Positions 982 through 18,300 of a DNA stretch of 64,000 nucleotides are shown piece by piece; within the stretch, counting starts at the first letter, position 1; every line of letters starts with the position of its first letter. The notes under the pieces were generated by a model, which saw nothing but the letters and a program-made list of their open reading frames with translations, made no database searches and had not been told where the DNA came from. The translations under genes were made by a program, and so were the position numbers. The DNA lies in sequence record MW879344.1, one strand, 5' to 3'.

Positions 982-1021
982 AGAGAAATTTGTAGCCCAC
1001 AGGGTGCCAAGATCCGCCTAT
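982..1021 (+). repeat. Promoter-proximal tripartite element, copy A
   Basis: AGAGAAAT..CCCACAGGGT..CTAT, 11 nt after -10 TACTAT(965-970); -35 TTGACA(941-946). Confidence 0.8.
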
Positions 1022-1056
1022 TAGAAATTAAATGCGAATGAGAATCATTACCGATT

Positions 1057-1097
1057 ATAGGTATATCTCCACACCCTCTGGGGTATCCGATTTCTCT
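1057..1097 (-). repeat. Tripartite element, copy A' (convergent with A)
   Basis: Minus strand AGAGAAAT..CCCCAGAGGGT..CTAT, 11 nt after TTGCAT-17-TATTAT (1109-1137). Confidence 0.8.
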
Positions 1098-1180
1098 CGT
1101 CTGAAATAATAATATCAAAGTACGGTATAAGATGCAAGGACTTTTTTCGTTTTTGGTGAAAATAGTTTAGATCGTTGTAT

Positions 1181-1325
1181 ACGTATAAAGGAAAGGATTT
1201 AAAAGGCGTACAGGTGGAGCGGGGCGAATGTATAGCAGTACTATATAAACGCCGTGTAATGGTTCCTATGCGTTATATGGGGGCGTGTACACGTATAAAG
1301 GAAAGAAACCATATAGCAGAACTAT
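1181..1325. repeat. Pair of short direct repeats in non-coding DNA
   Basis: ACGTATAAAGGAAAG at 1181-1195 and 1291-1305; TATAGCAG(T/A)ACTAT at 1231-1244 and 1312-1325. Confidence 0.6.
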
Positions 1326-1391
1326 TTTTAAAAAGATTGCATAAAGTACTTGCAAAGGTTTACCGGTATGATAATATCTATCTCGTCAACA

Positions 1392-1423
1392 CGACACCGC
1401 TCTTTAACAACTTGCTAGACAAT
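1392..1423 (+). promoter_or_regulatory. rrn-type boxA (NusB/NusE) antitermination site
   Basis: CGACACCGCTCTTTAACAACTTGCTAGACAAT vs E. coli rrn leader CGGCACTGCTCTTTAACAATTTATCAGACAAT (recalled from memory), 26/32 identical; boxA core GCTCTTTAACA exact; weak promoter TTGCAA(1350)/TAATAT(1372) upstream. Confidence 0.7.
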
Positions 1424-1479
1424 TACTTGATAGTGATTCTTCTCTTTAGAAATAAGGAAAAAGAAAAACAAAAAAGTAC

Positions 1480-1507
1480 TTGACAGCAAGAATGGAAAGT
1501 GTAGAAT
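1480..1507 (+). promoter_or_regulatory. sigma70-like promoter with A-rich UP element
   Basis: AAAAAGTAC-TTGACA-16-TAGAAT. Confidence 0.6.
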
Positions 1508-1514
1508 GTTGGTT

Positions 1515-1655
1515 ATCGAAAGGCGGTAAGGTTCGCCGGATGATAGGAAAGGGTAACAGGGCAAAATAAAGTACTGTTGCAGTGTGAAGCCGAAAGTGCT
1601 CACATAGCCTTATAAAAAGCTTACTAACTGTAAGTGACCTATCTACCGCCTAACG
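1515..1655 (+). ncRNA. Candidate multi-branched structured RNA (~140 nt)
   Basis: Closing stems AGGCGGTA(1521-28)/TACCGCCT(1644-51) and GATAGG(1542-47)/CCTATC(1638-43) enclose three hairpins, one with a GAAA tetraloop; own promoter; no ORF. Confidence 0.45.
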
Positions 1656-1784
1656 ATGTAACAAAAAAAGTTTCTAAGAAGTTGAAAAAAGTACTTGACG
1701 GATAGAAACGAAACGTAGTAATATGTGTTCAAGCCAAACGGCTTACCAAACAAACTAAACTAAACTTTTAAGAGGATTTAAATC

Positions 1785-2450
1785 ATGACTACTACCAACA
1801 ACGCAAAAGCTACCCGTATCACTCTGAACTCTATCGTTTTCGCCAATGCTCCAGTACTGGCAGCGGTTGCCGAAGGTGAACAGCCTCACAGCAAAGAAGT
1901 GATCGCACAGCACAAAACGCAGGTAGCGGAGTTTGTTGCAAATCAGGGTAAAGAACTGGCTGGCTACATTCTCGGCAAAGTTGAAACCCCTGACGTGATT
2001 CTGGCGATTCTGAAAGAAGCCGCTAAACAGGTTCCAGCAGTACAGAAACAACTGGCAGAAGAAGCCGCGAAAGCTGAAGCCGAAGCCGAAGCACAGCGTA
2101 AAAAAGACGCTGAAGCCGCTGAAGCGAAACGCAAAGCTGATGAAGAAGCACTTCAGGCCGAAAAAGATAAAATGTTGAAAATCCTTACTGATAGCGGTCT
2201 GGATCTGGAAATCGCTCAAACAATGGTCGCCGCTGGCCTGAAAGCAAAAGCACCAGCAAACGCACCGAAAAACAGCTACGAACGTGTAGCGGTAACGGTG
2301 AACGGCAAAGGCTATGATGTTCCAGTACGTGGGAACATGAGCGAAGAACTCAAAGCACTGGTTGCTAAAGACGGCGGGGATCGTGAAGCGTTTATCAACA
2401 AATACCGCAACGAACCAGCACCAGCAGCAGAAACCAACACCGCCGAATAA
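1785..2450 (+). CDS. Possible H-NS-like nucleoid/DNA-binding protein (221 aa)
   Basis: SD GAGGA; promoter TTGACG at 1695; Ala/Glu/Lys coiled coil, then LTDSGLDLE and a C-terminal TVNGKGYDVPVRGN..LKALVAKDG..EAFI resembling the H-NS DNA-binding domain; function tentative. Confidence 0.5.
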   Translation: MTTTNNAKATRITLNSIVFANAPVLAAVAEGEQPHSKEVIAQHKTQVAEFVANQGKELAGYILGKVETPDVILAILKEAAKQVPAVQKQLAEEAAKAEAEAEAQRKKDAEAAEAKRKADEEALQAEKDKMLKILTDSGLDLEIAQTMVAAGLKAKAPANAPKNSYERVAVTVNGKGYDVPVRGNMSEELKALVAKDGGDREAFINKYRNEPAPAAETNTAE

Positions 2451-2470
2451 TATCACGGCGTAACGCAAAA

Positions 2471-2490
2471 GGGGGCTAGTTAGCCCCCTA
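2471..2490 (+). terminator. GC-rich hairpin after the first gene
   Basis: GGGGGCTA-GT-TAGCCCCC; no clear U-run. Confidence 0.45.
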
Positions 2491-2562
2491 AGCCGTTCTA
2501 ACAGTACTGTAATGCAATCGGTTATAGTACTGTTAGAAACGCTTAAAACAGCGTACATTAAG

Positions 2563-2620
2563 GATTATCTGATAAATAAAAACGGTTGAAGTAATAACAA
2601 GCGTTTTTATAAGGATAATC
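2563..2620 (+). promoter_or_regulatory. SD-sequestering hairpin with late-promoter-like GATAAATA in the left arm
   Basis: GATTATCT/GGATAATC and TAAAAACG/CGTTTTTA stems; SD AAGGA at 2611-2615 partly paired. Confidence 0.5.
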
Positions 2621-2622
2621 AA

Positions 2623-3039
2623 ATGGGAAAACATTTATATAGGAAACCAGAACCCGCAAACGTTCAAGGCGTTTGCTGCGTAGAAGGTTGTAACAACTTA
2701 CAACAAGTAGTTAGAAAGGGCAAGTTTGGCCCATTGTGTTCACCTTGTGATCGTGCAAGGTACAACACAAAAGAAAAAGAGAAGTATGCAGGACTTACCA
2801 AATTATACGGACTAAGTAAAGAACAATATGATCTAATGTTGAGTGAGCAAAATCATTCTTGTTATATATGCGGTATAAAGGATATTGATTGCCCAAAATC
2901 AGTTTTACATGTAGATCATGATCACAGTACTGGAAAGATACGCGGTTTATTATGCCATCATTGCAATACTGGATTAGGACACTTTAAAGACAATGTAGAA
3001 CTGTTACAGAAAGCAATTGAGTACTTAAATCTTAATTGA
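2623..3039 (+). CDS. Endonuclease VII-family nuclease
   Basis: YGLSKEQYDLMLSEQNHSCYICG..LHVDHDHSTGKIRGLLCHHCNTGLGHFKDN: Zn-binding and His-Me motifs of the T4 gp49 family. Confidence 0.9.
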   Translation: MGKHLYRKPEPANVQGVCCVEGCNNLQQVVRKGKFGPLCSPCDRARYNTKEKEKYAGLTKLYGLSKEQYDLMLSEQNHSCYICGIKDIDCPKSVLHVDHDHSTGKIRGLLCHHCNTGLGHFKDNVELLQKAIEYLNLN

Positions 3040-3050
3040 GAGCGTAACAC

Positions 3051-3320
3051 ATGGAACTAAAACCAATTTCTGATCTGATTGATCGCAGTACTCGGATCGC
3101 CAGAACGATGACCGCCACCAGCCCGACAACATCGGTTTATAGTGGTTATCTGGCGTTTGTAGTTAATGGCGAATTAGTACAACGCAGGATCTACGATATG
3201 GCATATAATCATCTTTATGATTCTTGTATGTTCATAACTCACAAGAAAGTTAATTATGCCGTAAATCTTCCATGTAAGCCCCTTAGCGGTGCGTTTAACG
3301 CTGAATCACTAAAGGCATAA
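3051..3320 (+). CDS. Hypothetical protein
   Basis: ORF with SD-like GAG; followed by terminator 3331-3365. Confidence 0.6.
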   Translation: MELKPISDLIDRSTRIARTMTATSPTTSVYSGYLAFVVNGELVQRRIYDMAYNHLYDSCMFITHKKVNYAVNLPCKPLSGAFNAESLKA

Positions 3321-3330
3321 GGTAACATGT

Positions 3331-3365
3331 AAAACCGTGTAGGATCGTTCCTATGCGGTTTTTTT
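3331..3365 (+). terminator. Intrinsic terminator
   Basis: AAAACCGTGTAGGA/TCCTATGCGGTTTT + T-run. Confidence 0.7.
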
Positions 3366-3440
3366 ATTTGTCGAAAGTACTTGCAATAAGTTTTAAGTAC
3401 TGTAGAATATCCTATATCGAAACAACACGGAGTAAATGAA

Positions 3441-3665
3441 ATGAGATTAAGTAAACTGTTAGCGGAGTTGTCGAAGGTTGCAGAACTTGCGAAAGTACAC
3501 GGCAACAATGATCCCGATATTTCTTTTTGGCATGATGAAATTGAAACAATCGAACATTTAGAAGTATCATTCCCGCAAGATCTGGATGATGCCAGAATAC
3601 CGACTAAAGTACTATCGGCAACTGAGAAAGGAAACTTTTCATTTAGATTAGTACTACCAGAATAA
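3441..3665 (+). CDS. Hypothetical early protein
   Basis: SD GGAG; own promoter TTGCAA/TAGAAT 3381-3408. Confidence 0.75.
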   Translation: MRLSKLLAELSKVAELAKVHGNNDPDISFWHDEIETIEHLEVSFPQDLDDARIPTKVLSATEKGNFSFRLVLPE

Positions 3666-3723
3666 TCTTTACAAAAATGGGGTTGACAGCCAGCCCCAAA
3701 AAATGCAATAATATATACAAGCC

Positions 3724-3764
3724 AGAGAAATGGCGTAACCCACAGGGTGCAGAGATCCGTCCGT
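3724..3764 (+). repeat. Tripartite element, copy B
   Basis: AGAGAAAT..CCCACAGGGT..CCGT, 11 nt after TTGACA(3683)-18-AATAAT(3707-12). Confidence 0.8.
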
Positions 3765-3781
3765 AGAAAATTCAGTACTTA

Positions 3782-3822
3782 ATAGATATATCTCGGCACC
3801 CTCTAGGGTATCCGATTTCTCT
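3782..3822 (-). repeat. Tripartite element, copy B' (convergent with B)
   Basis: Minus strand AGAGAAAT..CCCTAGAGGGT..CTAT, 11 nt after TTGCTT-17-CATAAT. Confidence 0.8.
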
Positions 3823-3967
3823 CGTATGTAAGTATTATGCCAGTACTGAGAACATAAAGCAAGGGGTAAACGAAAATAAAAATTAAAATTCAAATGAAAA
3901 AAGTACTTGCATTAAGTTTTAAGTATTGTATACTTACCTTATCGAAACAAATGAAAGGATTTAAGAA

Positions 3968-4360
3968 ATGGAACGTAATGAGCAATTTAGATTAGTTCTT
4001 GAAGTACTGGAAAACATGCAAGCTTGTTTAGATGTTAATGATACATATGTGCGTATCAATGGCAAGAGTTTTAATCTTAATCGACATGCGGGGATCTGCT
4101 GGCATGTTCTCGCCTATACTCCTAATAGTGATTATTCAGGTATTGGGTTAGAATATCTTTCCCCGTTGTTTGTTAGTATGGGCTTACATCCTCATTATCC
4201 TGTAGAAATGCAGATCGTTAATGAGTTAGATCAAGCCCGTTGGATTCATTCAAAAGCAACAGATCAATATAATATCTTGGGCGAAGAAGGAAAGATCCGC
4301 CGTAAACTTTTAAAGGATTTGATTCAGTACTATAAAAAAGAGCTTGCAATTGAATCGTAA
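3968..4360 (+). CDS. Hypothetical early protein
   Basis: SD AAGGA; own promoter at ~3908-3935. Confidence 0.75.
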   Translation: MERNEQFRLVLEVLENMQACLDVNDTYVRINGKSFNLNRHAGICWHVLAYTPNSDYSGIGLEYLSPLFVSMGLHPHYPVEMQIVNELDQARWIHSKATDQYNILGEEGKIRRKLLKDLIQYYKKELAIES

Positions 4361-4399
4361 TACTGTATAATCTTTTATATCGAAACGGGAGATATAATC

Positions 4400-4855
4400 A
4401 TGAATAGCAAACAATTTCAAGATGCAACAAGAGAAGCCTTTTTGAAGTACTTCCCAAATGGCTACATTGGTATTTCTAAATTGTCAATTGGTGGCGGTTG
4501 TGGTATCTTCTGCGGGTTGATTGGTGACATTAATGATGTGGGCGGGAAGATCCGCATGAATGACCCAATGACAGTACGGGCATTCATTCATGATAATTTT
4601 TCATTCAATGACGAAACAACTGATTTAGAAAATGTTGTTATCGAATTCGATGGATCTTGGATCTCAGTACTTCCAGACAATCCACACAATTATTGTCAAT
4701 CTCACAAGGTGCCTAGTCGCAAGATTAACGCGGAGCCGTCAAAGGCATTAATTAATCTAGATAAGTACTTTAAACGCTTAAAGGATAGTGTAACCGAACA
4801 AGCTGGATTGAATCGTATTATTCAGCAAGAAAAGATCCCCGCAAAATATCTATAA
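4400..4855 (+). CDS. Hypothetical early protein
   Basis: SD GGGAG; own promoter. Confidence 0.8.
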   Translation: MNSKQFQDATREAFLKYFPNGYIGISKLSIGGGCGIFCGLIGDINDVGGKIRMNDPMTVRAFIHDNFSFNDETTDLENVVIEFDGSWISVLPDNPHNYCQSHKVPSRKINAEPSKALINLDKYFKRLKDSVTEQAGLNRIIQQEKIPAKYL

Positions 4856-4867
4856 TATATTGTCAAA

Positions 4868-4901
4868 AGTACTTGCATTAAAGTAGCGAGTACTTTACAA
4901 T
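4868..4901 (+). promoter_or_regulatory. Representative AGTACT-flanked sigma70 promoter
   Basis: AGTACT(4868)-TTGCAT(4873)-17-TACAAT(4896) with a second AGTACT at 4889; same layout at 3376, 5864, 7725, 8213, 11116, 13861, 16281. Confidence 0.75.
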
Positions 4902-4930
4902 AAGTTATCGTTAAGTGAGAGGATAAAAAA

Positions 4931-5065
4931 ATGTCAAAGATTGAAGCTTACAGAGCTGGACTGTATATGTTTACAGTACCGCCAGTAATAACCAACGCAT
5001 GGAAAGAAGTTGATTGGATCAATTTTATTGATTCTAATGGTAAATGGATGGTTCCTGTAGTATAA
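4931..5065 (+). CDS. Small hypothetical protein (44 aa, not in ORF track)
   Basis: SD GAGGA, MSKIEAYRAG...WMVPVV. Confidence 0.55.
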   Translation: MSKIEAYRAGLYMFTVPPVITNAWKEVDWINFIDSNGKWMVPVV

Positions 5066-5085
5066 TTTTAATTGAGGGTTTTACT

Positions 5086-5490
5086 ATGTTTTTACATGTA
5101 CGTGGTTTTGCTGGTGGCGGTTTCTGCTTTATGATTGATGATAAAGCGGTATCAGTACAAGAAGCATTGATCCAGAATGGTGGACGTTTCCACAAGGCAA
5201 CAATAAACGCATTGAACAGAAAGAACCTTTTTAATGAGTCAGATTTAAAAGCCTTTGAAGTACTGGCAGAATCATTACATAAAGGTTTAACGCCTTGCTC
5301 CATTCGTCAAATCCTGCGTAATGATTACGGGATCGACGTGTTAAAAACTGATTACCTTATGTTATCATCTTCTCAGGTTGAAGATCTTAAAACGGTTTAT
5401 AAGTACGCACGTTATAAGGTTCCTACGGGTTACGTATTGAAACATTCGCCAATGTACTACTTTTACAGGTATTTGAGCAACGTAAAATAA
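5086..5490 (+). CDS. Hypothetical early protein
   Basis: SD GAGGG before MFLHVRG. Confidence 0.75.
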   Translation: MFLHVRGFAGGGFCFMIDDKAVSVQEALIQNGGRFHKATINALNRKNLFNESDLKAFEVLAESLHKGLTPCSIRQILRNDYGIDVLKTDYLMLSSSQVEDLKTVYKYARYKVPTGYVLKHSPMYYFYRYLSNVK

Positions 5491-5495
5491 TTTAA

Positions 5496-5533
5496 AAAAG
5501 GGGTTGACTTCGGTCAGCCCTTTGTAGTACTAT
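5496..5533 (+). promoter_or_regulatory. Terminator-promoter cassette (PeSL-like)
   Basis: GGGGTTGAC-TTCG-GTCAGCCC-TTT hairpin containing -35 TTGACT(5504), -10 TACTAT(5528). Confidence 0.7.
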
Positions 5534-5544
5534 AGTATCACTCC

Positions 5545-5586
5545 AGCGAAATGGACTAACCCTATAGGGTGTAGTACTGTACCTAT
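5545..5586 (+). repeat. Tripartite element, copy C
   Basis: AGCGAAATGGACTAACCCTATAGGGT..CTAT, 11 nt after -10. Confidence 0.85.
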
Positions 5587-5679
5587 AATAAAAATAATTA
5601 AAATTCAAATGAAAAAGTACTTGCATTACGTATTGAGTCATGTATAATCATTATATCGAAAGCAAACGAGGATTTAACG

Positions 5680-5856
5680 ATGGATCATTTAATCGCATTA
5701 CTTAATGCCTTTTGTATTAAACATGGGTTAGTACCTGCTAGTGCCGATGAAATGCTAATCGAGTATTTGGGTACTGAAAATCCAGATCCTGCAATTGTTT
5801 CATGGTTACAAGCTTATATTGTACTGTGGGACTGTACAAGTGATTTAGGTTTATAA
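5680..5856 (+). CDS. Small hypothetical protein (58 aa, not in ORF track)
   Basis: SD GAGGA, own promoter; MDHLIALLN... Confidence 0.6.
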   Translation: MDHLIALLNAFCIKHGLVPASADEMLIEYLGTENPDPAIVSWLQAYIVLWDCTSDLGL

Positions 5857-5928
5857 TTAAAATAGTACTTGCAATAATATGTGAGTACTGTATAATTCTT
5901 TATATCGAAAACAAACGAGGATTTTTAA

Positions 5929-6357
5929 ATGAGAACATGTAAAGAGTGTGGTAATGATTGCAAGTTAGATGTAAATGAAATCGTTAACCATTATAACGAA
6001 GATGGGAAGATTGATTTTGATTTAGATGCGGATCATGTTGCAATTCCTGAATTAACCGACGCCGAAAGTAATATGCAAAATCCAGTACTACAAACGGCAT
6101 TCAATTTTTCCGGTGATGTACCTTGCATTAACTACGGGTTCAATTCTGGCGGTTATGAAAAATTCCAGTACTTTATTTGTGCTGATGGTGGTTGTTTAGG
6201 GATCGGGACTGTAATTAATGAGTTCCATAAAGTGAACTTTAATGATCCTGATGATAAGCAATGGTATATCGTAGGGGTTGAAGTTAATTACGAAAATACC
6301 GAACTGGTAGACGATCACACAGGGGATTACATACCAGCAGCATACAGCGAAAACTAA
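5929..6357 (+). CDS. Hypothetical early protein
   Basis: SD GAGGA; own promoter 5869-5896. Confidence 0.75.
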   Translation: MRTCKECGNDCKLDVNEIVNHYNEDGKIDFDLDADHVAIPELTDAESNMQNPVLQTAFNFSGDVPCINYGFNSGGYEKFQYFICADGGCLGIGTVINEFHKVNFNDPDDKQWYIVGVEVNYENTELVDDHTGDYIPAAYSEN

Positions 6358-6397
6358 ACAAAAGCAAAGGGGATCTATGATCCCCTTTTGAGGTTAT

Positions 6398-6661
6398 ATG
6401 AATTTACATTATTGTACCAGAAAATTAGTTGTTGCTTTTGATTGTAGTTCTGATAAAATACATTGTGTAATATACAGAAAGGGAACACCACGCACAGATC
6501 ACTGGAAAGTACTGCAATCCTATACAATGCAACGTAAAGGGTTTAAGCACCTTGATAGCAGGACACAAAAGGCATGTTTACGGCAAGTACTTAAAGTTAT
6601 GCGTAATCGTATTACACAGGCGTTACATGTTGCATTAACTACCAAGGATATGATAGAATGA
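6398..6661 (+). CDS. Hypothetical basic protein
   Basis: SD GAGG. Confidence 0.65.
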   Translation: MNLHYCTRKLVVAFDCSSDKIHCVIYRKGTPRTDHWKVLQSYTMQRKGFKHLDSRTQKACLRQVLKVMRNRITQALHVALTTKDMIE

Positions 6662-6825
6662 AATATGTAATCTATTATGATCGCAGTACTAAAAGCTGGT
6701 GGGGGTACTGGATTGATGAAAATGAAAATCAGTTAGGTGAAGCTGTTTTTGAATATCAAAAAGAAGATTGCCTGATACTCTTAGGAGAAGTCAAGGAAAA
6801 TCGTCGGAATTTAATTCAAAAATAA
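6658..6825 (+). CDS. Small hypothetical protein (55 aa, not in ORF track)
   Basis: ATGA overlap with upstream stop; MKYVIYYDRSTKSWWGYW. Confidence 0.55.
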   Translation: MKYVIYYDRSTKSWWGYWIDENENQLGEAVFEYQKEDCLILLGEVKENRRNLIQK

Positions 6826-6878
6826 ATGAAAAAAGTACTTGCATTCATGTGAGTACTTTTATATAATACTTACATCGA

Positions 6879-6920
6879 AGCGAAATTCGAATTGCCCACA
6901 GGGTGCGGAAGTATATCTAT
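6879..6920 (+). repeat. Tripartite element, copy D
   Basis: AGCGAAAT..CCCACAGGGT..CTAT, 11 nt after TTGCAT-17-TATAAT(6862-67). Confidence 0.85.
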
Positions 6921-7090
6921 AAAAAAGAATTAAAATTTAAATGAAAAAGTACTTGCATTAGATCGTGGATATGGTATTATAACTACATCGAAAGGCACTA
7001 AGGAAACAAATATGAAACGCTGGCATGAAGTACTGTTGTTCGTTTTGTTTATTCTGGTAACTTGTGTAAATTTTAATTGAGAGGTTCAAA

Positions 7091-7330
7091 ATGTCTTTAT
7101 ATAAAGTAGTAGTGAACTGTATTAGTGTTGGTATGGCTGGATCTCATACTCTGTTAGTATCTGGTGACTTCCCGCATATTAACGAGGCAAGAATAGGGAT
7201 CAATGAGTGGGCGGCTAATGAGTACGCCGGACGCTTAGATGTTAACGTAACATTTTTGAATCATTCAGATCAAATTTATGTTACTGATTTGAAATCATCA
7301 GATTATGATAAAGTTATTATAATGCGTTAA
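7091..7330 (+). CDS. Hypothetical protein
   Basis: SD GAGG. Confidence 0.7.
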   Translation: MSLYKVVVNCISVGMAGSHTLLVSGDFPHINEARIGINEWAANEYAGRLDVNVTFLNHSDQIYVTDLKSSDYDKVIIMR

Positions 7331-7432
7331 CTATATTATCAAAAGTACTGGACAAATCAACATCATTAGAGTATCATCTTTGTATCGAAGAAGATTGGTA
7401 TTGTTAATTAACTTTTAAGTGAGATATAATTA

Positions 7433-7711
7433 ATGAAAGCATACGAACATAAGACCATGACAGTTGCGGATCTTATTGCTAAACTGGAAAGTACTTATCC
7501 GAACAAAAACGCCGTTATCGTTGCGGATCTATGGGACGAAGACGATATTCGTGAAGTAGCACAGGATATTAATATTCAGCTCGACCGCGAAGAATGTCGA
7601 GTAGTAGCGGCTTATCTGGATGATACCGCAGATAAGACCAATGGTTATAATGATGATAACATTAAGTTAGCCATTTATCAAGTTATCAATTTGGGACTTA
7701 TTAATCCTTAA
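7433..7711 (+). CDS. Hypothetical protein
   Basis: SD GAGA; own promoter. Confidence 0.7.
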   Translation: MKAYEHKTMTVADLIAKLESTYPNKNAVIVADLWDEDDIREVAQDINIQLDREECRVVAAYLDDTADKTNGYNDDNIKLAIYQVINLGLINP

Positions 7712-7801
7712 CTATATTATCAAAAGTACTTGCAAATAGAAAGCGAGTACTTTATAATGAAGTTATTGAATCGGTACTTATTAACTAAGAGGAAGTATAT
7801 C

Positions 7802-8002
7802 ATGGCTCAAAAAGATCGTCGTTACTCAGTACAGGGTGAATTCACCGGAGCACCAAAGAAAGAGTTTGTTATTCGTTTCTGTGGTACGTTCGTTTCTGCT
7901 CATGCCACCCGCGATCTGGCTGATAAAGAAGTTGCCCGCCGCAAAGCTGAAATGGATACCCCGATGGTTAAATCGTCATGGTCAACAGTGGAGGCGGTAT
8001 AA
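7802..8002 (+). CDS. Hypothetical early protein
   Basis: SD GAGG before MAQKDRR; promoter 7730-7758. Confidence 0.75.
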   Translation: MAQKDRRYSVQGEFTGAPKKEFVIRFCGTFVSAHATRDLADKEVARRKAEMDTPMVKSSWSTVEAV

Positions 8003-11104: not shown

Positions 11105-11180
11105 TTATTACCAAAAGTACTTGACAGAAATTATCGAGTACTTTATAATAATCACATCAACCACACAAGAGGCACTAAAA

Positions 11181-11501
11181 ATGGAAAAGACAGTATATTG
11201 CGGCACAAGAACACTGGCACGTGAAGCAGCAAAAGAACTCAACGGCAAATTTAAAGATATGGGCAAAGATGCTCCATATGGTGAACGTTGGGTAGTACTG
11301 ATTGAAGTTCCAGACGTTCAAGAAGAAGTACATACTCAATTCGTTGATACTCTGCCAGAAGATGCAGTACGTGTACTGAATCAACCAACAGGCTTTAAAG
11401 GTGAACAGACGTTGAAGACTTCCAATAACAAGCCTGTACGGGTGTTGTGGCGTCGTTCTAAAGTTACTATGCGACTAGCCGCACATCTGGCGAAAGCTTA
11501 A
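11181..11501 (+). CDS. Hypothetical early protein
   Basis: SD GAGG before MEKTVYCG; promoter TTGACA(11121)-17-TATAAT. Confidence 0.8.
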   Translation: MEKTVYCGTRTLAREAAKELNGKFKDMGKDAPYGERWVVLIEVPDVQEEVHTQFVDTLPEDAVRVLNQPTGFKGEQTLKTSNNKPVRVLWRRSKVTMRLAAHLAKA

Positions 11502-11553
11502 CAGTAACCGATTGGGGGCGTTATATGCCCCCTTAATTAAGTGAGTACACTAC

Positions 11554-11796
11554 ATGAAAAAGGTTCAAGTAGATAGTACACAATTACGAATACATTTCAA
11601 GGCACAAACAAAAGTACTTGACAAAGCTATTCGTGTTGTGAAAGAATACAACACTGGTAAAGTAAGGCCAAGACGATTAGGGTGTGGATTGTTTTCAGTA
11701 CTGGATGTTTCCCGTAACGAGCGAATCGTTATTAAAGATAACACACTGAATCTAATGACGCATGAACAATATAATAAATTCGTTGAACGCCGTTGA
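11554..11796 (+). CDS. Small basic protein, possibly ParE/RelE-like fold
   Basis: RRLG..SVLDVSRNERIV..LMTHEQYN pattern; family call weak. Confidence 0.5.
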   Translation: MKKVQVDSTQLRIHFKAQTKVLDKAIRVVKEYNTGKVRPRRLGCGLFSVLDVSRNERIVIKDNTLNLMTHEQYNKFVERR

Positions 11797-11848
11797 CATA
11801 ATCCCCTAAATACGTATATAATAACTTATACGATTAGGGGATTTTATT

Positions 11849-12316
11849 ATGCCTGGAAAATTCAGATCCAAGAGTGGTGCTACACTAGCAGGACACTCTG
11901 ATAAATGGAGCGATGAGAATCGTTCAGCAAGTAGCCATGAAGCGGGGCAAGGCAGTAAAGGCAGTCGCAATCAAGGTACTGGCATTCAAGGAAAAATTAA
12001 CGCAATGCCATCACAGGGAATAGATACTTCCCGCATGGATAAATCAGAAAAGCTAAAGTACTTTAATTCATTAGGGTTACTACAGCCAGAACAAAAGCAA
12101 GAACTTTCTATAAAAACATGGCCTGATACTTTACGTAAAGTATTCAAAGACGAGCCAGTATATATCAAAGACATTACAGCCGCTTTAAAATCAGTACCGC
12201 AAGCAAACTACCCGCAAGCAGTACAAGCAGGATTCAACGCCACACAAGAGACAATGAATCAAACCGATGATGTTTATGACATATACGCCGCTATCATGCA
12301 AGCCATTCAGGGTTAA
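11849..12316 (+). CDS. Hypothetical protein with Gly/Ser/basic N-terminus
   Basis: SD AGGGGA inside hairpin AATCCCCTAA(11800-09)/TTAGGGGATT(11834-43); internal promoter TTGACA-18-TATAAT. Confidence 0.75.
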   Translation: MPGKFRSKSGATLAGHSDKWSDENRSASSHEAGQGSKGSRNQGTGIQGKINAMPSQGIDTSRMDKSEKLKYFNSLGLLQPEQKQELSIKTWPDTLRKVFKDEPVYIKDITAALKSVPQANYPQAVQAGFNATQETMNQTDDVYDIYAAIMQAIQG

Positions 12317-12384
12317 AAAAAAAGGGTTGACTTAGGTCAGCCCTTTTGCTATTGTATCAGTACTTAAACAAAAGGAACAAAATC

Positions 12385-12735
12385 ATGAGAAAACTTCTTT
12401 TAGCTACATTACTCTTTGCTGGTGCTGTAAACGCACAAACTTATGTTTGCAACACTTACACCGTATATCAGGGTGTTGGGAATGGTCAGTACAATAAAAT
12501 TGATAACAGTACGCCATCATTCAGTACTATCATCGAAACATCACGCGATGTAATTAAAGTGTATGTTAAAGGTGAAGAAAGTACGTATACCGAATTCTGG
12601 AAAGATTACAATGATTATCGTAATGATACCGGATTGATTAAACAGTCTGGTAATGAATTCGAAATCAAAACAGCGATTGAAGATCCTACAGGAACCGCAT
12701 ACATTCCAGTAAAAATAGAATACCATTGCAAATAA
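12385..12735 (+). CDS. Hypothetical exported protein
   Basis: SD AAGGA; signal peptide MRKLLLATLLFAGAVNA. Confidence 0.75.
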   Translation: MRKLLLATLLFAGAVNAQTYVCNTYTVYQGVGNGQYNKIDNSTPSFSTIIETSRDVIKVYVKGEESTYTEFWKDYNDYRNDTGLIKQSGNEFEIKTAIEDPTGTAYIPVKIEYHCK

Positions 12736-12788
12736 TTAAAATAAAGACTTGACTCGTTCAGGTCTTTTTTGTATACTATATTCAATCC

Positions 12789-12830
12789 AGCGAAATGGAC
12801 TAACCCTATAGGGTACATAAATGTATCTAT
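12789..12830 (+). repeat. Tripartite element, copy F
   Basis: AGCGAAATGGACTAACCCTATAGGGT..CTAT, 11 nt after TTGACT-17-TATACT. Confidence 0.85.
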
Positions 12831-12990
12831 TAGATATAGTACTGGATGTTTGTACAGTACTAAAAGAATTTAAAAATAAGATGAAAAAGTCCTTGCATTA
12901 AAATACAGATTTGCTATTATAACTACATCGAGAGGCGGCAATCTCTTGGTAAACAAACTTTAAAACATTTTAATTGAGAGAGAAATAAAC

Positions 12991-13323
12991 ATGGCTAACT
13001 TCAACGCACAGAACAAAGTAGATCGTACTCCTGCTCACACTTTAGAAGTAGGTACAATCGTAGTACACAACTACACTACATTCTGTCATGGTACTATTAC
13101 TGGCTATGCTCCAGATGGTGCTTACCATGTTTATTTCCCTACTGATATGGCACCTAACATGCCTAAGTATCAAGCTAACACAGTAGAAGCCACGCAAAAC
13201 CGTACCCGTACATTGACGGCTGGATCTGGTTTCTTTGTAAGCAAACACAAGTCATTCGCGTCTATTCGTGAACTACAACGCAAGTACCGCCAGAAAGGTG
13301 CTGCACTGGAAATGTTAGCATAA
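12991..13323 (+). CDS. Hypothetical early protein
   Basis: SD GAGAG; highly-expressed codon usage. Confidence 0.8.
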   Translation: MANFNAQNKVDRTPAHTLEVGTIVVHNYTTFCHGTITGYAPDGAYHVYFPTDMAPNMPKYQANTVEATQNRTRTLTAGSGFFVSKHKSFASIRELQRKYRQKGAALEMLA

Positions 13324-13395
13324 CAAATTAAAAAGGGGTTGACAATGTTCAGCCCCTTTGTTATAGTATTAGTACTTAAACGAGAGGATAACAAT

Positions 13396-13617
13396 ATGTT
13401 TACTGCATTAGAATCTTTGGTTAGAGAAGAAGTTTCGGAAGAAGAAGTAAAAGCAGGTTTAAAACTGCGTGATCTTTGCATCCAGAATGATCTGGATATT
13501 CCCGAAGTACTAATGACGTTGCATTACTTCAATGGTATTGAACCAAAATTAATCATTGACAAAGTATCAGCGTTAAACACGCCGTTACTTGAAAATGCAA
13601 TGCATGTACTGCATTAA
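13396..13617 (+). CDS. Hypothetical protein
   Basis: SD GAGGA before MFTALES. Confidence 0.7.
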   Translation: MFTALESLVREEVSEEEVKAGLKLRDLCIQNDLDIPEVLMTLHYFNGIEPKLIIDKVSALNTPLLENAMHVLH

Positions 13618-13789
13618 TGAAAACTATTATTAATGCAATCATTCTATCATTTATAATGATACTAGTACAACGTCAAACATCCTTCCCACTGCTTTGTATT
13701 ATAGCAGTACTGACAGGATTGTTAATTTATAAATGGTAAAAATAAAGGCTTGACACGTTCAAGCCTTTTTGTTATAGTACTATCAATCC

Positions 13790-13831
13790 AGCGAAATGGA
13801 CTAACCCTATAGGGTGTATAAATGTATCTAT
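13790..13831 (+). repeat. Tripartite element, copy G
   Basis: Identical 26-nt core, 11 nt after TTGACA-17-TATAGT. Confidence 0.85.
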
Positions 13832-13946
13832 AATAAAATAATTAAAATTTAAATGAAAAAAGTACTTGCAATAAGTTTTAAGTACTGTATAATGTTTTAC
13901 ATAGGGTAAGCAATACCGCTTACCCATATTAAGTGAGAGAATCAAA

Positions 13947-14522
13947 ATGAAATTTACTGAACTGAATGCTGAACAACAAGCTAGAGCAATTGAAGTACAT
14001 CGTGATATTAACGTAGATTATCAAGAATGGAATGATTTTGTTAAAGAAGAACATCATTCTAAACTTGAATTAGTTGGGTTCGATGGTGTAGAATCTGCTT
14101 ATTCTGGTTTTTGGTCACAAGGTGACGGTGCTAGTTTTACGGCTAGTTCATTAGATATTGAAAAGTTTTTACGTTCACAAAAACGCTGGACTTACTATCG
14201 TCCATTGCATGAAATGATTCGCATTAACGAATTGTGGGTTAAAGTTGTTCGTACTACACATCATTATTGTCACGAAAATACTACACAAGCAGAATTACAT
14301 GGTGAGCATTACATTGACTTAACTCCACGTCAAGAAAAATTATATGAAGAACTGGAAAAGGAAATAGATGCATATATAACTAATGCAGGTCAAGAATACT
14401 ATCGTGCTCTGAACAATGAATATAATGATCTAGTTTCAGATGAACAAGTCAAGGAAACAATAATAGCTAATGAAATGGAATTTGAAGAAGATCCACGCGA
14501 AAGCTGCGTAACTTATATCTAA
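13947..14522 (+). CDS. Hypothetical acidic early protein
   Basis: SD GAGAG; SGFWSQGDGASF motif. Confidence 0.8.
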   Translation: MKFTELNAEQQARAIEVHRDINVDYQEWNDFVKEEHHSKLELVGFDGVESAYSGFWSQGDGASFTASSLDIEKFLRSQKRWTYYRPLHEMIRINELWVKVVRTTHHYCHENTTQAELHGEHYIDLTPRQEKLYEELEKEIDAYITNAGQEYYRALNNEYNDLVSDEQVKETIIANEMEFEEDPRESCVTYI

Positions 14523-14860
14523 ATTCAAAATAGGGATTGACAAGTTCAATCCCTTTTGATACTATATCAGTACTGAAACGGAGTTATATGAAAAAGAAAT
14601 ATATAGTTCTGTACAGTACTTTAAACGAAGCTTACATTCAAGGCCAAAAAATGGAACGCATTGTTCAAGTACTGATTGTTATTTTATTCATTTTGTACTG
14701 GATACTGTAATGCGAATAATCAAGTACTACAATGGTGTAAGTATTAAAATGATTGATACCGATCATTTTGTAGTACAGAAAGGCCGTATAAAAATTACTT
14801 GCAAACGTGCCGTAATTGCATTATACTATTTCTATCAACTAATCATTAAGTGAGAAGAAA

Positions 14861-15196
14861 ATGAGAAAACCAAACGTAGAATTACTTTGCGATTCACATC
14901 ATGGCGTTTACATTCCGCAAATTATGATCCATCGTCTTAAAGACAATGGTTGGCGTAATATCCCACTTAATGCCGTGGAAGTACTTTCGCATCCAGATAA
15001 TGAAGATTATTGGGATACATGGAATCAAGTACTTGACAATGCTGAATGGCATGATGAATACACTACACAAGTCTTTAAGCTACATCATGATGGTGACTTG
15101 TGGGCGTATTGTGAAGCGTCAATGTCGCCTACAGAGTATCATAACATGTTCGGTGAATATCCTGAATGGTTCAATGAAGAACTCGAAGAAGCTTAA
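14861..15196 (+). CDS. Hypothetical acidic early protein
   Basis: SD-like GAGAAG; HHGVYIPQ..YWDTW..LHHDGDLW. Confidence 0.8.
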   Translation: MRKPNVELLCDSHHGVYIPQIMIHRLKDNGWRNIPLNAVEVLSHPDNEDYWDTWNQVLDNAEWHDEYTTQVFKLHHDGDLWAYCEASMSPTEYHNMFGEYPEWFNEELEEA

Positions 15197-15254
15197 AAGA
15201 ATTACAAAAAGTACTTGACTACGGTCAGGTACTTTGTTATAGTTATATTACTCC

Positions 15255-15296
15255 AGCGAAATGGACTAACCCTATAGGGTACAGTACTGTACCTAT
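15255..15296 (+). repeat. Tripartite element, copy H
   Basis: Identical core, 11 nt after TTGACT-17-TATAGT; flanks nearly identical to copy C for ~60 bp. Confidence 0.85.
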
Positions 15297-15408
15297 AATA
15301 AAAATAATTAAAAATTTAAATGAAAAAGTCCTTGCACAATAGAATACAGTCGGTATAATAGATACATAGGTTAAGGGAATGGCTCTTAACCAGATAGGAG
15401 TACTGAAA

Positions 15409-15807
15409 ATGACTTATACCAAAACCCCAGAACAGCAACTGTTGGATGATGCAATCAGAGCTGATCAGAAAACAGAAGTTGAAAAACGTATTGCAATTGA
15501 GCGTAAAATACTTCGGTTTGTGTTCAAGTATGTAATAAAATCCGGTATGTCAGTTTCTTGTTTTGATGGTGAAGAATGGTATTTGAAACGCTGTACTAAA
15601 ATCAATACTATCATGGAAGAAATCCAATCGGTTGATGAAGAAAGTTTCCGTTTCCGTAAAGAAGATGGCACTATCTTTGGCGGCATTGTATGCATTTATG
15701 GTAATGGTAATTATGGCTATGATGTAATCTCTGATAGTACTTACAATGATGAATTCAATGAATGGTATAAACCAATTGATGAGTACATTGATGGTCTTCA
15801 AAAATAA
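15409..15807 (+). CDS. Hypothetical early protein
   Basis: SD AGGAG before MTYTKTPEQ. Confidence 0.75.
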   Translation: MTYTKTPEQQLLDDAIRADQKTEVEKRIAIERKILRFVFKYVIKSGMSVSCFDGEEWYLKRCTKINTIMEEIQSVDEESFRFRKEDGTIFGGIVCIYGNGNYGYDVISDSTYNDEFNEWYKPIDEYIDGLQK

Positions 15808-15861
15808 TTAAAAATAGGGGTTGACGAGAATCAGCCCTTTTTGCTATAATAATTCCAATGA

Positions 15862-15903
15862 AGCGAAATTCTCTAACCCTATAGGGTGCGGAAGTGTATC
15901 TAT
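15862..15903 (+). repeat. Tripartite element, copy I
   Basis: AGCGAAATTCTCTAACCCTATAGGGT..CTAT, 11 nt after TATAAT(15845-50). Confidence 0.85.
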
Positions 15904-16024
15904 ATCTTTTAGTACTGTATATCTGTACAGCAAAAATAAATTAAAAATAAGATGAAAAACAGCTTGCAATGTAATGCTGGTGGATGTATTATATCTATAT
16001 CGAAACAGCAACGGGGTACAAGAA

Positions 16025-16264
16025 ATGGCTAATAAAGAATTTGAATTTAAAGTTAGAAAATGGTCAGATACTAATGCTAGACCATTTGATGTAGTACTGT
16101 TGGACTATCTCAAAAACAATCAGCATTATCAACCTAACGTTGAATTCAGTACTGAAGCCTTAGCCAATCAACATTTGGTTTCGTTGCAAAATTCAGTACT
16201 TAACAATCCTGATAGTGTTAACTTTATTCGTGATCATTGGCCTGTTGATGGCGGCATCGAATAA
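16025..16264 (+). CDS. Hypothetical protein
   Basis: SD GGGG before MANKEF. Confidence 0.7.
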   Translation: MANKEFEFKVRKWSDTNARPFDVVLLDYLKNNQHYQPNVEFSTEALANQHLVSLQNSVLNNPDSVNFIRDHWPVDGGIE

Positions 16265-16347
16265 AAATTTAAACGTAAAAAGTACTTGACTACATCAGTT
16301 GAGTACTTTAAAATAGAATCTTAATCAACGCAATAGGAAACGAAATC

Positions 16348-17241
16348 ATGAAAATGTACAAAGGTATCGCAGGTAAAGCAATCAAAGAAAACCGTCCACT
16401 GCTAAGATCAGAACTGGAACTGGTTGTTCCTTCTATCTTTTCAAGTACTGGACACGAATCACGTTCAGCACGGTTCGCACCTGTTGCAACAATTGACGTT
16501 GTTGACCGCTTAGCAAAGGAAGGTTATCAACCATTCTTTGCGATTCAGTCAAATGTACGCGACGAATCTAAACGTGAATTTACTAAACATATGCTGCGTT
16601 TCCGTCAGCATGATGGTAAAACATCCGGCGAATCTAATGAGATCATTCTCGTTAACGCCAACGATGGCACAAGTGCCTATCAATTGATGGCTGGTCAATT
16701 CCGTTTCGTTTGTGCTAATGGTCTAGTTATGGGCAACATGAAGCATAACACAAAGATCTATCACAAAGGTAACAACATCATGGATGACGTTATCGAGGGC
16801 GTTTACACTGTAGTAAAAGACTTTGATAACATCGAACGTTACAAACATGAAATGCAACGTATCCAGCTTAATGATGTAGAGCGTAAGACATTCGCCACCG
16901 CTGGCTACCTCATGAAAGAAGGTTTGCCAGAAAGTGGTTCACTGGATGACGCTGTTTATAACCCATTACAGTTGTTATCACGCAATGGCCTGAACAGCCT
17001 TGACCAGTACGATAACAGCTTATACAGTACTTTTAACACTGTACAGCAGCACTTAATTAACGGCGGTCAACGCTCATTCATGGAAGATCGTAACGGTCGT
17101 ACCCGCCGCCGTTCAAGCCGTGGAGTTACTAATATCAATAAGAACATTGACATTAATAGTAACTTATGGCAACTCGCTACTGCACTGGTAGAAAAGAATA
17201 CTAAGGTTGTGCATGATATTGTTGACGCACAATTATCATAA
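16348..17241 (+). CDS. DUF932/DUF945-family phage/plasmid protein
   Basis: PSIF..H.SRS.RF..V.T..V...L.KEGYQPF...S.VRD..KR.FTKHMLRFR; EIILVNANDGTSAYQLMAG.FRFVCANG. Confidence 0.85.
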   Translation: MKMYKGIAGKAIKENRPLLRSELELVVPSIFSSTGHESRSARFAPVATIDVVDRLAKEGYQPFFAIQSNVRDESKREFTKHMLRFRQHDGKTSGESNEIILVNANDGTSAYQLMAGQFRFVCANGLVMGNMKHNTKIYHKGNNIMDDVIEGVYTVVKDFDNIERYKHEMQRIQLNDVERKTFATAGYLMKEGLPESGSLDDAVYNPLQLLSRNGLNSLDQYDNSLYSTFNTVQQHLINGGQRSFMEDRNGRTRRRSSRGVTNINKNIDINSNLWQLATALVEKNTKVVHDIVDAQLS

Positions 17242-17262
17242 TAATTAAGTACTAAAATCATG

Positions 17263-17313
17263 TAAGGGGTTGACACTTGTCAGCCCCTTTTGCTATACTT
17301 CTTTTACACCAAC
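17263..17313 (+). repeat. 51-bp duplicated terminator-promoter cassette, copy 1
   Basis: 49/51 identical to 17681-17731; differs only in the hairpin loop. Confidence 0.85.
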
Positions 17314-17329
17314 CGGAAAGGAAAAACAA

Positions 17330-17677
17330 ATGTTAGATGTATACGTAAGATCAGATTTAGTTTCAAATGGTCGCAATGAGTTCGGTACTGAACAAGAAAA
17401 AACAGAGTACTATATCATTGCTGAATCATCAAGCGGTCAACGTATTAGATTAGATAGTGTATCAATTGTTAATAGAGAATACACTGATTCACAATGTACT
17501 GAGTACTTAGAACGTATCGTTACTAAAATTAAAAATCATTTAGCTGGTGGCGGAAAATTAAATCTAGATTACTGGTACGAAATTGATCCTTGCTATGGTT
17601 CACAACGTTACATTGATTTAGATAGTACTGGTTACTTCTATAAGCGTGAGAAACGCGAAGATTCTTATAAAAATTAA
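17330..17677 (+). CDS. Hypothetical protein
   Basis: SD AAGGA before MLDVYV. Confidence 0.75.
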   Translation: MLDVYVRSDLVSNGRNEFGTEQEKTEYYIIAESSSGQRIRLDSVSIVNREYTDSQCTEYLERIVTKIKNHLAGGGKLNLDYWYEIDPCYGSQRYIDLDSTGYFYKREKREDSYKN

Positions 17678-17680
17678 TAC

Positions 17681-17731
17681 TAAGGGGTTGACAATAGTCA
17701 GCCCCTTTTGCTATACTTCTTTTACACCAAC
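17681..17731 (+). repeat. 51-bp duplicated terminator-promoter cassette, copy 2
   Basis: See 17263-17313. Confidence 0.85.
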
Positions 17732-17744
17732 AAAGGAAAGTATT

Positions 17745-17963
17745 ATGACTATACAAGAAAGTAGTATGACTAGACAAGAAATAATTAAAGCGGCGAACAA
17801 AGTACTGTCATACAACCATCTCGAAATGATGGAAGCTATGGAAAGAGTACTAGGCACGTTTGGCGAAGATAATAAAGATGAATTCGCCGCTGTCTATGAT
17901 GAAGTACAGGATATTTTATATCCTCATGGTACTGGTGAAGATGCAGTATACTGCGAAAATTAA
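17745..17963 (+). CDS. Hypothetical protein
   Basis: SD AAGGA before MTIQES. Confidence 0.7.
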   Translation: MTIQESSMTRQEIIKAANKVLSYNHLEMMEAMERVLGTFGEDNKDEFAAVYDEVQDILYPHGTGEDAVYCEN

Positions 17964-18024
17964 TATTTGACAACCGCTGTCAGTACTGATATACTGGCAG
18001 CATATTAAACGAGAGGATACAATC

Positions 18025-18204
18025 ATGGTACAAGAAGATATGACTGAATTGCGTAAACGCTGGTATGATCTGGCACGTGCGGGTACTGCGATCACTGGTG
18101 ATAACAGAACGCTATTCAATACACTGGATGGCTGGCAGCGTCAAGAACTAAAGAATGCATATGTTCAGGGCATGACTGATGAAGTTCAGACATGGGATGA
18201 ATAA
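18025..18204 (+). CDS. Small hypothetical protein (59 aa, not in ORF track)
   Basis: SD GAGGA, own promoter; MVQEDMTELRKRW. Confidence 0.65.
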   Translation: MVQEDMTELRKRWYDLARAGTAITGDNRTLFNTLDGWQRQELKNAYVQGMTDEVQTWDE

Positions 18205-18258
18205 TTAAAAAGAAAGGCTTGACTTCGGTTGAGCCTTTTGCTATAGTACTATCAATGC

Positions 18259-18300
18259 AGCGAAATGCACTAACCCTATAGGGTGCCAAGATCCGCCCGT
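18259..18300 (+). repeat. Tripartite element, copy J
   Basis: AGCGAAATGCACTAACCCTATAGGGT..CCGT, 11 nt after TTGACT-17-TATAGT. Confidence 0.85.

Follow-up and report, generated by a model that had tools for sequence, protein, structure and literature searches.

Introduction

The hyperplastic early regions of T4-type phages carry repeated cassettes named promoter-early stem-loops (PeSLs), in which a terminator-like stem-loop is combined with a sigma70-like early promoter and which close with the translation start signals, Shine-Dalgarno sequence plus start codon, of the gene they serve, no transcribed structured element being part of the definition (PMC2839356, PMC4122927). In a distant Pseudomonas jumbo phage, PA5oct, two abundant noncoding RNAs (ncRNAs) arise from the direct terminal repeat (DTR), make up 2-5% of the phage reads and stay high throughout infection (PMC7318152). 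Here we describe a module of about 55 nt that is present in twelve copies within 64,000 nucleotides (the window) forming the left end of the genome of Erwinia phage pEa_SNUABM_49 (MW879344.1, 358 kb), an Eneladusvirus among the RaK2/CBB-like jumbo phages, whose relatives infect Serratia, Yersinia, Pectobacterium, Cronobacter, Klebsiella, and Escherichia coli. The module, fused to PeSL-type and related early promoters, is a genuine and discrete structured RNA that is conserved and had not been described before.

On the promoter side the likeness to PeSLs is close, since a sigma70-like early promoter is joined to an overlapping or upstream stem-loop, the A3-4 G3-loop-C3 T3-4 form of the KVP40 and nt-1 cassettes matches the AAAGGGG-TTGAC...GTCA-CCCCTTT form present here, and the cassettes are repeated in the early region at boundaries where gene modules are gained, lost or swapped. 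Besides, blastn searches with the promoter half matched KVP40-like Vibrio and Aeromonas phages. The difference lies in what follows the promoter, which is here the structured RNA of about 55 nt and then a second promoter, with no Shine-Dalgarno sequence or start of a served gene at the 3' end; moreover, some copies (A' and D among them; the copies are lettered A to J from left to right, A' and B' facing A and B) use another promoter type. The promoter half is thus the described PeSL-type cassette, whereas the transcribed RNA module is new, and an earlier reading of these letters made without database searches (the sequence-only reading), which had recognised no described family, was right about the transcribed element and not about its promoter.

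The PA5oct ncRNAs likewise come from gene-less transcribed regions inside a long DTR (transcription of the present element being predicted), and they differ in being single-copy and 236 and 451 nt long; the covariance model described below detected no similarity to them (best E = 0.56). Short structured RNAs with covarying hairpins that lie just after early promoters and act while attached to RNA polymerase (RNAP) are known as nut and put sites. The lambda nut and HK022 put sites occur about twice per genome, none of them antisense, and the two-hairpin put RNA makes RNAP resistant to terminators without a protein. The present element shares with both the position of a short hairpin RNA just downstream of an early promoter, and it differs from them in being multi-copy, with antisense copies, in having an unrelated sequence and fold and in having no Rfam match. 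Attenuators such as trp and his, with their 1:2 and 2:3 pairings, resemble it in the central segment (here GGGU) that has two mutually exclusive partners of similar stability near a promoter, but the element lacks both a terminator hairpin and a U-tract, and it has neither a conserved leader peptide nor a core for ligand binding.

Results

The first 20 kb of the window are 100% identical to the start of pEa_SNUABM_49, and all genes annotated there are "hypothetical", none of them overlapping the twelve sites. The window has 12 occurrences of the motif GAAAT-N11-13-AGGGT, where shuffled sequences give an expectation of 0.35, and 0 of 100 shuffles reached 12. A covariance model trained on eight ungapped copies and run with filters off over all 64 kb returned the same 12 sites only (E <= 1.3e-6), the next match having E = 0.12. 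In all 12 copies a T stands at +8 after AGGGT, followed by CTAT (10 copies) or CCGT (2). The pairs A/A' and B/B' are convergent, with predicted transcription start sites 126 and 109 bp apart, and copy E is antisense. Every copy lies inside the terminal repeat of about 19.6 kb and none between 19 and 64 kb of the window. The limits of this repeat (1-19563) are inferred: homology with the end of the annotated 22,456-bp terminal repeat of CBB breaks off at about 19,563, and the repeats of Muenster (20,030 bp) and fEgEco12 (20,993 bp) are of similar length, for which reasons we take 1 to about 19.56 kb as the DTR. The GC content also falls beyond about 20 kb.

The same model recovered 68 copies in eight genomes representing all four RaK2-like genera, with 5-12 copies per region scanned. 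Counted as model matches, there are 12 in pEa_SNUABM_49 (Erwinia), nine in fHe-Yen9-04 (Yersinia; hereafter Yen9-04), seven in Muenster (Klebsiella), eight in XbC2 (Xanthomonas, as recorded), nine in CBB (Pectobacterium), nine in Kaldavass (Erwinia), five in the 9-kb stretch scanned of a 360-kb IMG/VR contig, and at least nine in fEgEco12 (E. coli), there in the true DTR. All the copies found sit in the terminal repeat or the left ~20 kb, and none occurs in Muenster between 20 and 40 kb. Convergent pairs recur across genera at about 0.3-1.2 kb and 3.2-4.3 kb from the left end, with a third pair in CBB near 20.8 kb, and some diverged partners in such pairs (in CBB and XbC2) fell below the model threshold and were seen only by eye. 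Syntenic copies retain their own stems of the first hairpin between pEa_SNUABM_49 and Yen9-04, in which the 50-nt core of copy E is identical. A 14-base core pattern matched at least 119 IMG/VR loci, and of the 80 loci fetched and scanned (675 kb) three were true, the covariance model giving no match in the 77 unrelated ones. A region of fEgEco12 that was matched by the promoter half only contained no element copies. The SPFH protein was tried as an anchor for the region in the E. coli and Klebsiella phages and dropped, as those phages do not have it.

The transcript is predicted to fold into three helices, two of which compete, and this fold is supported by covariation. A 5' hairpin (H1) is followed by a GGGU(G) segment with two alternative partners. 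In the window H1 is a stem of 3-5 bp around a G(C/A)GAAA loop, preceded in most copies by only 2-3 unpaired nt; across copies the stem is variable and covarying and the loop purine-rich. Among 43-50 comparable sequences its inner three pairs have 0 unpaired cells, and they show many double substitutions (CG 31, GC 16, AU 3, among others), and more than 20 different H1 stems fold without guidance from the model. In nine of the 68 copies H1 is replaced by an A-rich unstructured leader, so that the CCC arm of the second helix begins 14-16 nt after the predicted +1 in these and 19-22 nt after it in the others.

In the second helix (H2) an upstream (A/G)CCC pairs with GGGU. Loops of 3 and of 4 nt both occur, and compensated variants are found as CCU/AGG (Yen9-04, CBB) and CUC/GAG (XbC2, Kaldavass), which together argue against an operator in duplex DNA. 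In the third (H3), GGGUG pairs with Y-R-Y-Y-Y located 9-13 nt downstream; 97.9% of these positions are paired, and shifting the partner by 1-3 columns lowers the figure to 32-60%. The minority bases of this partner comprise 88 transitions and 6 transversions, compared with 74 and 92 at neighbouring variable positions (Fisher p = 9e-17). All five pairs form in 59 of the 68 copies, whereas the complementary strand offers only 2-3 of five in most; the helix depends on G.U pairs and forms in the sense transcript only. Mean energies are -4.2 kcal/mol for H2 and -4.0 kcal/mol for H3, the latter being the more stable in 37 of the 68 copies. Given the shared GGGU and the nearly equal energies, the module can be described as a 5' hairpin plus a two-state switch. 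In its tail, the U at +8 is invariant in all 68 copies. RNAalifold applied to a MAFFT alignment missed H1 because of the placement of gaps, and blind mutual information returned mostly linkage within subfamilies.

Outside this genome the primary sequence is less constant. Copies of the E. coli phage have CCC-ACC-GGG, other genera have other H1 loops, and GAAAU is replaced there by GAAAC, AGAUAA, AGAACAA, AGAGCAA or GUGUAA. The resemblance of the element to a T7-like or N4-like promoter for a phage RNAP (TAACCCTATAGGGT), followed as a lead only, was set aside because covariation and G.U pairs indicate RNA.

The module is tightly coupled to promoters of the sigma70 type. In the window the -10 hexamer ends 11 nt before AG(C/A)GAAAT (12 nt in copy E), an A occupies the canonical +1 in 12 of 12 copies, 5 nt upstream of that motif (6 nt in E), and all 12 promoters score 8-11 of 12 with spacers of 17-18 nt. 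Across seven sources, 50 of 59 copies have the element start 5-6 nt after the -10 hexamer, and 52 of 59 promoters score at least 9 of 12, a level reached by 4.7% of random positions. From this promoter quality and phasing we infer that host RNAP transcribes the module. Ordinary promoters of the window stand 23-56 nt from the next start codon, whereas for the element promoters this distance is 124-815 nt and a second promoter intervenes. No conserved open reading frame (ORF) follows the element: a canonical start exists in only 31 of the 68 copies, the ORFs have anything from 1 to 40 codons, their peptide shows no conservation and the spacing varies by 1-2 nt. The string GGGTG, 5 nt and NTG resembles a Shine-Dalgarno sequence with a start codon, and a mini-ORF was rejected on these same start and length counts. 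In Kaldavass (L127) a 30-aa "hypothetical protein" is annotated over an element copy (14004-14096) and is probably spurious.

These results bear out most of what the sequence-only reading had described, namely the number, positions and strands of the copies, their phasing to the promoter with the exception in E, the constant T and the CTAT or CCGT after it, the convergent and antisense arrangement, the gene-less promoters and the restriction to early DNA, which here falls within the putative DTR. Its notion of a dedicated promoter-coupled non-coding system agrees with the lack of a conserved ORF and the confinement to early, terminal-repeat DNA, and the relatives keep both the location and, in most copies, the phasing. 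Two descriptions needed revision: the "tripartite block" is a real element that turned out to be a set of hairpins, two of them competing for one strand, and the consensus GAAAT and the A of AGGGT are invariant in this genome and variable in other genera.

The cassettes occur in three settings: before the promoter proper to a gene, opposed to a convergent second copy, or leftward and facing a palindromic terminator. The last is exemplified by copy E and by the leftward Muenster copy at 4989; a further leftward Muenster copy, at 11967, consists of a promoter scoring 12 of 12, the element, 13 nt and then a GC hairpin with CTTTTTCTTT, and looks like a compact small RNA (sRNA) gene of about 100 nt. 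Element promoters mark the exact starts of syntenic blocks shared between genomes (window positions 13739, 15816, and 18211). Where the window has copies F to I, Yen9-04 has a single copy with matching flanks, which represents gain or loss of a 3-kb module by recombination between copies.

Within the window, copy A (941-1027, plus strand; model E 3e-9) has the promoter TTGACA-18-TACTAT (941-970), a predicted +1 at ~977, the H1 arms ACAAA/TTTGT, the H2 segment GCCC-ACA-GGGT and its H3 arm at 1015-1019, and it is opposed by A' (1051-1137, minus; TTGCAT-17-TATTAT, +1 ~1102, E 1.3e-6). Copy B (3683-3770, plus; TTGACA-18-AATAAT, +1 ~3719, H1 GCCA/TGGC) is opposed in the same way by B' (3776-3862, minus; +1 ~3827), which is antisense to genes 4 to 1. 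Copy D (6839-6926, plus; +1 ~6874, H1 TCGAA/TTCGA) has a AAAAAGTACTTGCA-type promoter; like A' and B', it has no hairpin-borne -35, the three sharing the AAAAAGTMCTTGCA promoter type. Copy E (8626-8714, minus; TTGACA-17-TATTAT, +1 ~8679) runs antisense into a palindromic terminator-like hairpin (8583-8606) that lies between gene 17 and the copy and was detected on both strands.

The -35 lies within a terminator-like hairpin in four further plus-strand copies, F (12749-12836, +1 ~12784, hairpin 12743-12767), G (13750-13837, +1 ~13785, hairpin 13744-13768; model score 79 bits), H (15215-15302, +1 ~15250, hairpin 15208-15235), and I (15821-15909, +1 ~15857, hairpin 15816-15839), and by eye also in C (5504-5592, plus, +1 ~5540) and J (18219-18306, plus, +1 ~18254, H1 TGCA/TGCA). 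The promoters that serve genes form a second conserved class, usually AAATGAAAAAGTMCTTGCA-N-TATAAT with AAATGAAAAAGTMCTTGCA upstream of the -10. Members of this class come next after copies C (the gene's own promoter, 5621-5648), D (6953-6980), G (13866-13893), H (15332-15359), I (15964-15992), and J (18332-18360), and others are found at 1480, 7349, 7730, 11121, 16286, and 19131. Their transcripts would open with a common A-rich leader (AUCGAAAG...) that resembles the leader of the copies without H1. The annotated start of gene 35 (15974) falls within the gene's own predicted promoter at 15964-15992, and an ATG about 50 nt downstream, after GGGG, is a more plausible start.

A cmscan search of Rfam 15 (E <= 1, window positions 1-22000) had no match at the 12 sites; its two weak, sub-threshold matches (rimP leader, 33.6 bits, and asX2), both at 10359-10435 on the minus strand, reflect only the GC hairpin and U-tract of a terminator. 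The genome papers on CBB, Eneladusvirus and fEgEco12 make no mention of the element, and no published transcriptome was found for any phage that bears it. Sequences resembling boxA (GCUCUUUAACAA, up to 3 mismatches) have no sense-strand match inside any module and an overall count at chance (82 against 89.6). The tails read CUAUAAUAAAA..., and a terminator scan found no GC hairpin with U-tract at any module. A copy from fEgEco12 had no match in 5,426 complete E. coli genomes, their CRISPR arrays included (blastn, word size 11, E <= 1), a result that speaks, for E. coli, against an RNA anti-CRISPR and against mimicry of a host RNA. Two other candidates were dropped, a CsrA sponge because GGA occurs in only about half of the copies and a sigma-dependent pause through A-GGG-T because the A is not universal.

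Discussion

Our favoured reading, held tentatively and at somewhat less than an even chance, is that the module serves as a protein-binding RNA, made in abundance in the immediate-early phase as a small RNA or as a 5' module, and acts largely in trans. Within minutes of the start of infection, host RNAP would initiate at these strong promoters in both terminal repeats; the RNA would start with pppA and yield many small RNAs or 5' modules of ~55-110 nt protected by the 5' hairpin; the H2/H3 switch and the invariant tail bases, such as the U at +8, would form the recognition site for a protein; and the RNAs would act mainly in trans by binding or titrating a factor of the host or an early one of the phage. 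The repeated cassette may double as a crossover point for swaps of early gene modules. Because what comes after it is a gene's own promoter, another copy or a terminator, it seems to be the RNA itself that is produced here, and not a required gene leader; action in trans is favoured by the gene-less placement, the indifference to orientation, the occurrence of stand-alone units of promoter, element and terminator, and the fact that no downstream gene is required. A bolder version, which we regard as possible and rather unlikely, is that the module represents an unrecognised class of phage immediate-early RNA, a multi-copy, promoter-fused two-state switch confined to RaK2-like terminal repeats that captures or reprograms, in the earliest minutes of infection, a central host machine (such as RNAP, the anti-Shine-Dalgarno end of the ribosome, Hfq, or the degradosome).

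Several observations weigh against action in trans. The ends, abundance and any processing of the RNA are predictions from sequence. Most rightward copies have no terminator, so that their transcripts should read into the next gene. Dispersed, individually conserved and syntenic copies, 5-12 per region, are more typical of cis signals than of a trans RNA, and a two-state fold is typical of cis-acting leaders as well. Single-sequence folding gave weak energies, with z-scores of -0.1 to -2.6 that are unconvincing by themselves, and for this reason the case for the fold rests on comparative evidence. Moreover, Pfam and PHROGs scans of the 45 annotated proteins of the first ~21 kb yielded no RNA-binding candidate and no partner protein was identified, and a charge and arginine-run screen of 42 DTR proteins found no N-like arginine-rich protein.

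Some of these points would suit the main rival reading, a co-transcriptional device acting in cis, which we consider unlikely and in which the nascent module would pause or reprogram its own RNAP (by a pause, or by loading a factor as nut, put or ops do) or set the fate of its transcript, the exchange of H2 for H3 serving as a timer. Its strict position at the 5' end of the transcript, the three segments with competing helices as in the 1:2 and 2:3 pairings of attenuators, and the many syntenic, individually conserved copies all fit such a device, and the leftward copies face terminators that it could open to read-through. The consensus pause of E. coli is G-11 G-10 ... Y-1 G+1, and GG-N8-U-G/C/A of the module, with its U invariant in 68 of 68 copies, matches it. 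However, the five copies F to J are packed into 5.5 kb and each would start transcription anew past a terminator, which a processive mechanism would make needless; transcription from about a quarter of the copies would be antisense; the module is not followed by a U-tract or a fourth segment; a separate single-copy boxA is already present; and no Q-, N- or NusG-like domain was seen among the 45 proteins. Antiterminator loading, one of the roles offered by the sequence-only reading, thus keeps a place among the candidates and has become less likely, given the five copies within 5.5 kb, the antisense quarter and the separate boxA at 1399-1410. If the module only shielded read-through early mRNAs from decay that depends on the 5' end, as the 5'-terminal hairpin of the ompA 5' untranslated region (UTR) stabilises its mRNA in E. 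coli, the short stretch of 2-3 unpaired nt before H1 in most copies would be accounted for, but neither the H2/H3 switch and the invariant tail bases nor the separate gene promoters, convergent pairs and terminator-facing copies would be, and nine copies have no H1 at all; such a simple stabiliser is improbable. Slightly more improbable is a purely recombinational or "mobile regulatory" cassette, an extended PeSL whose repetition is kept by module shuffling while its RNA has no function: synteny blocks that start at element promoters, the 3-kb F-to-I difference with Yen9-04 and a promoter half that fits the PeSL definition speak for it, yet homology needs no compensatory stems, no transition-only variation on one strand and no conserved two-state energetics.

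A translation-start mimic or minigene has a smaller chance again. Here GGGUG would act as a Shine-Dalgarno sequence, with an NUG 5 nt on opening an ORF of 1-3 codons (e.g. AUG-UAU-CUA-UAA) that traps ribosomes or a rare tRNA, as has been proposed for the bar minigenes of lambda. GGGUG is complementary to CACCU at the 3' end of 16S rRNA, the invariant T falls in the middle of the triplet, which is ATG, GTG or TTG in 31 of 68 copies (including all seven of Muenster), and a stop follows after exactly three codons in 21 of 68, with a start-stop in four. In the other 37 the triplet is ATC, ATA, GTA, GTC, CTG, CTA or TTA, the variable ORF lengths and peptides reported above do not suggest a coding function, and GGGUG is paired in both folds. 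A role at the level of DNA, whether as R-loop primers for origins, in pulling the genome into the cell or as a CCC-N3-4-GGG operator, is very improbable. The convergent pairs at conserved left-end positions and the terminal-repeat location would be in its favour; the cumulative GC skew has no switch, 5-12 copies are many for origins, the leftward copies would oppose inward pulling, an operator would not tolerate spacings of both 3 and 4 nt or symmetric double changes, and H3 pairs on one strand only and with G.U pairs. For the R-loop origins and RNAP-driven DNA entry suggested by the sequence-only reading nothing was found in support. The least probable explanation is its proposal of a decoy for the type III toxin ToxN, a pseudo-ToxI acting through GAAAU. 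This motif is present in all 12 window copies, and ToxIN occurs in some genera among the hosts of these phages, but other genera do not conserve GAAAU and there is no tandem 34-36-nt array of the ToxI kind, on which two counts the idea fails; in addition, the nine copies without H1 do not fit, no ToxN domain was found among the 45 proteins scanned, and the motif lies in a loop closed by its own U.

RaK2-like jumbo phages have hosts that include E. coli, Klebsiella, Erwinia, Pectobacterium, Serratia, Yersinia, and Cronobacter, and nearly all of their early genes have no known function. At the 5' end of predicted transcripts in four genera there is now a compact RNA module whose structure has evolutionary support (68 copies, three helices) and which is suitable for submission as a new RNA family. 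It provides landmarks for the annotation of terminal repeats, helps to avoid spurious small coding-sequence calls over the element, and extends the "mobile regulatory cassette" idea of the PeSL to jumbo phages with a transcribed RNA added. Since E. coli phages carry the element, its function is testable with the standard tools of that host, namely E. coli RNAP, genetics and pull-downs of RNA. If the RNA does act on a core host factor, as the bolder version of our reading would have it, this would be a new mode of early host takeover, an RNA-based takeover or anti-defence layer distinct from nut and put sites, sRNA regulators, ToxI mimics and RNA anti-CRISPRs.

Other features of the terminal repeat

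Meaningful Pfam matches among the 45 proteins were DUF932, Band_7, Endonuclease_7, a ParE-like toxin domain, and DUF5484. Three small DTR proteins are common to all six genomes compared, g03, g37, and g25, which between them occupy 3051-3320, 17330-17677 and 11554-11796. The last of these, g25 (11554-11796), belongs to the ParE/RelE superfamily (PF24732, E 9e-13), has a pI of 10.4 and is the only basic protein common to all genera; its homologue in Muenster is annotated as a YafQ-like ribonuclease toxin.

A single exact copy of the rrn boxA consensus GCTCTTTAACAA (0.015 expected in the window) is located on the plus strand at 1399-1410, about 22 nt past the -10 of its own promoter (1350-1376) and after a small hairpin. 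Yen9-04 has the same exact sequence in synteny, CBB, XbC2 and Kaldavass have a version with one mismatch (GCTCTTTAAAAA), and no boxA was found at the corresponding place in Muenster or fEgEco12. This site is a candidate for Nus-factor antitermination of the rightward early unit.

The boxA belongs to a leftmost stretch of ~1.7 kb (1-1785) with no annotated gene, which also carries the first convergent pair, further promoters and a 24-bp tandem repeat (732-796, 2.7 copies); the left ~1.1-1.8 kb of relatives are likewise nearly gene-free. ARAGORN found 0 tRNA or tmRNA genes in the 64-kb window. The hexamer GGTACC is absent from the window, and AGTACT is about 20-fold over-represented, with 128 occurrences against 6.2 expected in 1-20 kb and 154 against 11.9 expected in 20-64 kb. 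AGTACT turns up in promoters and -10 regions, within small hairpins that follow the elements and, in copies C and H, within the H3 loop.

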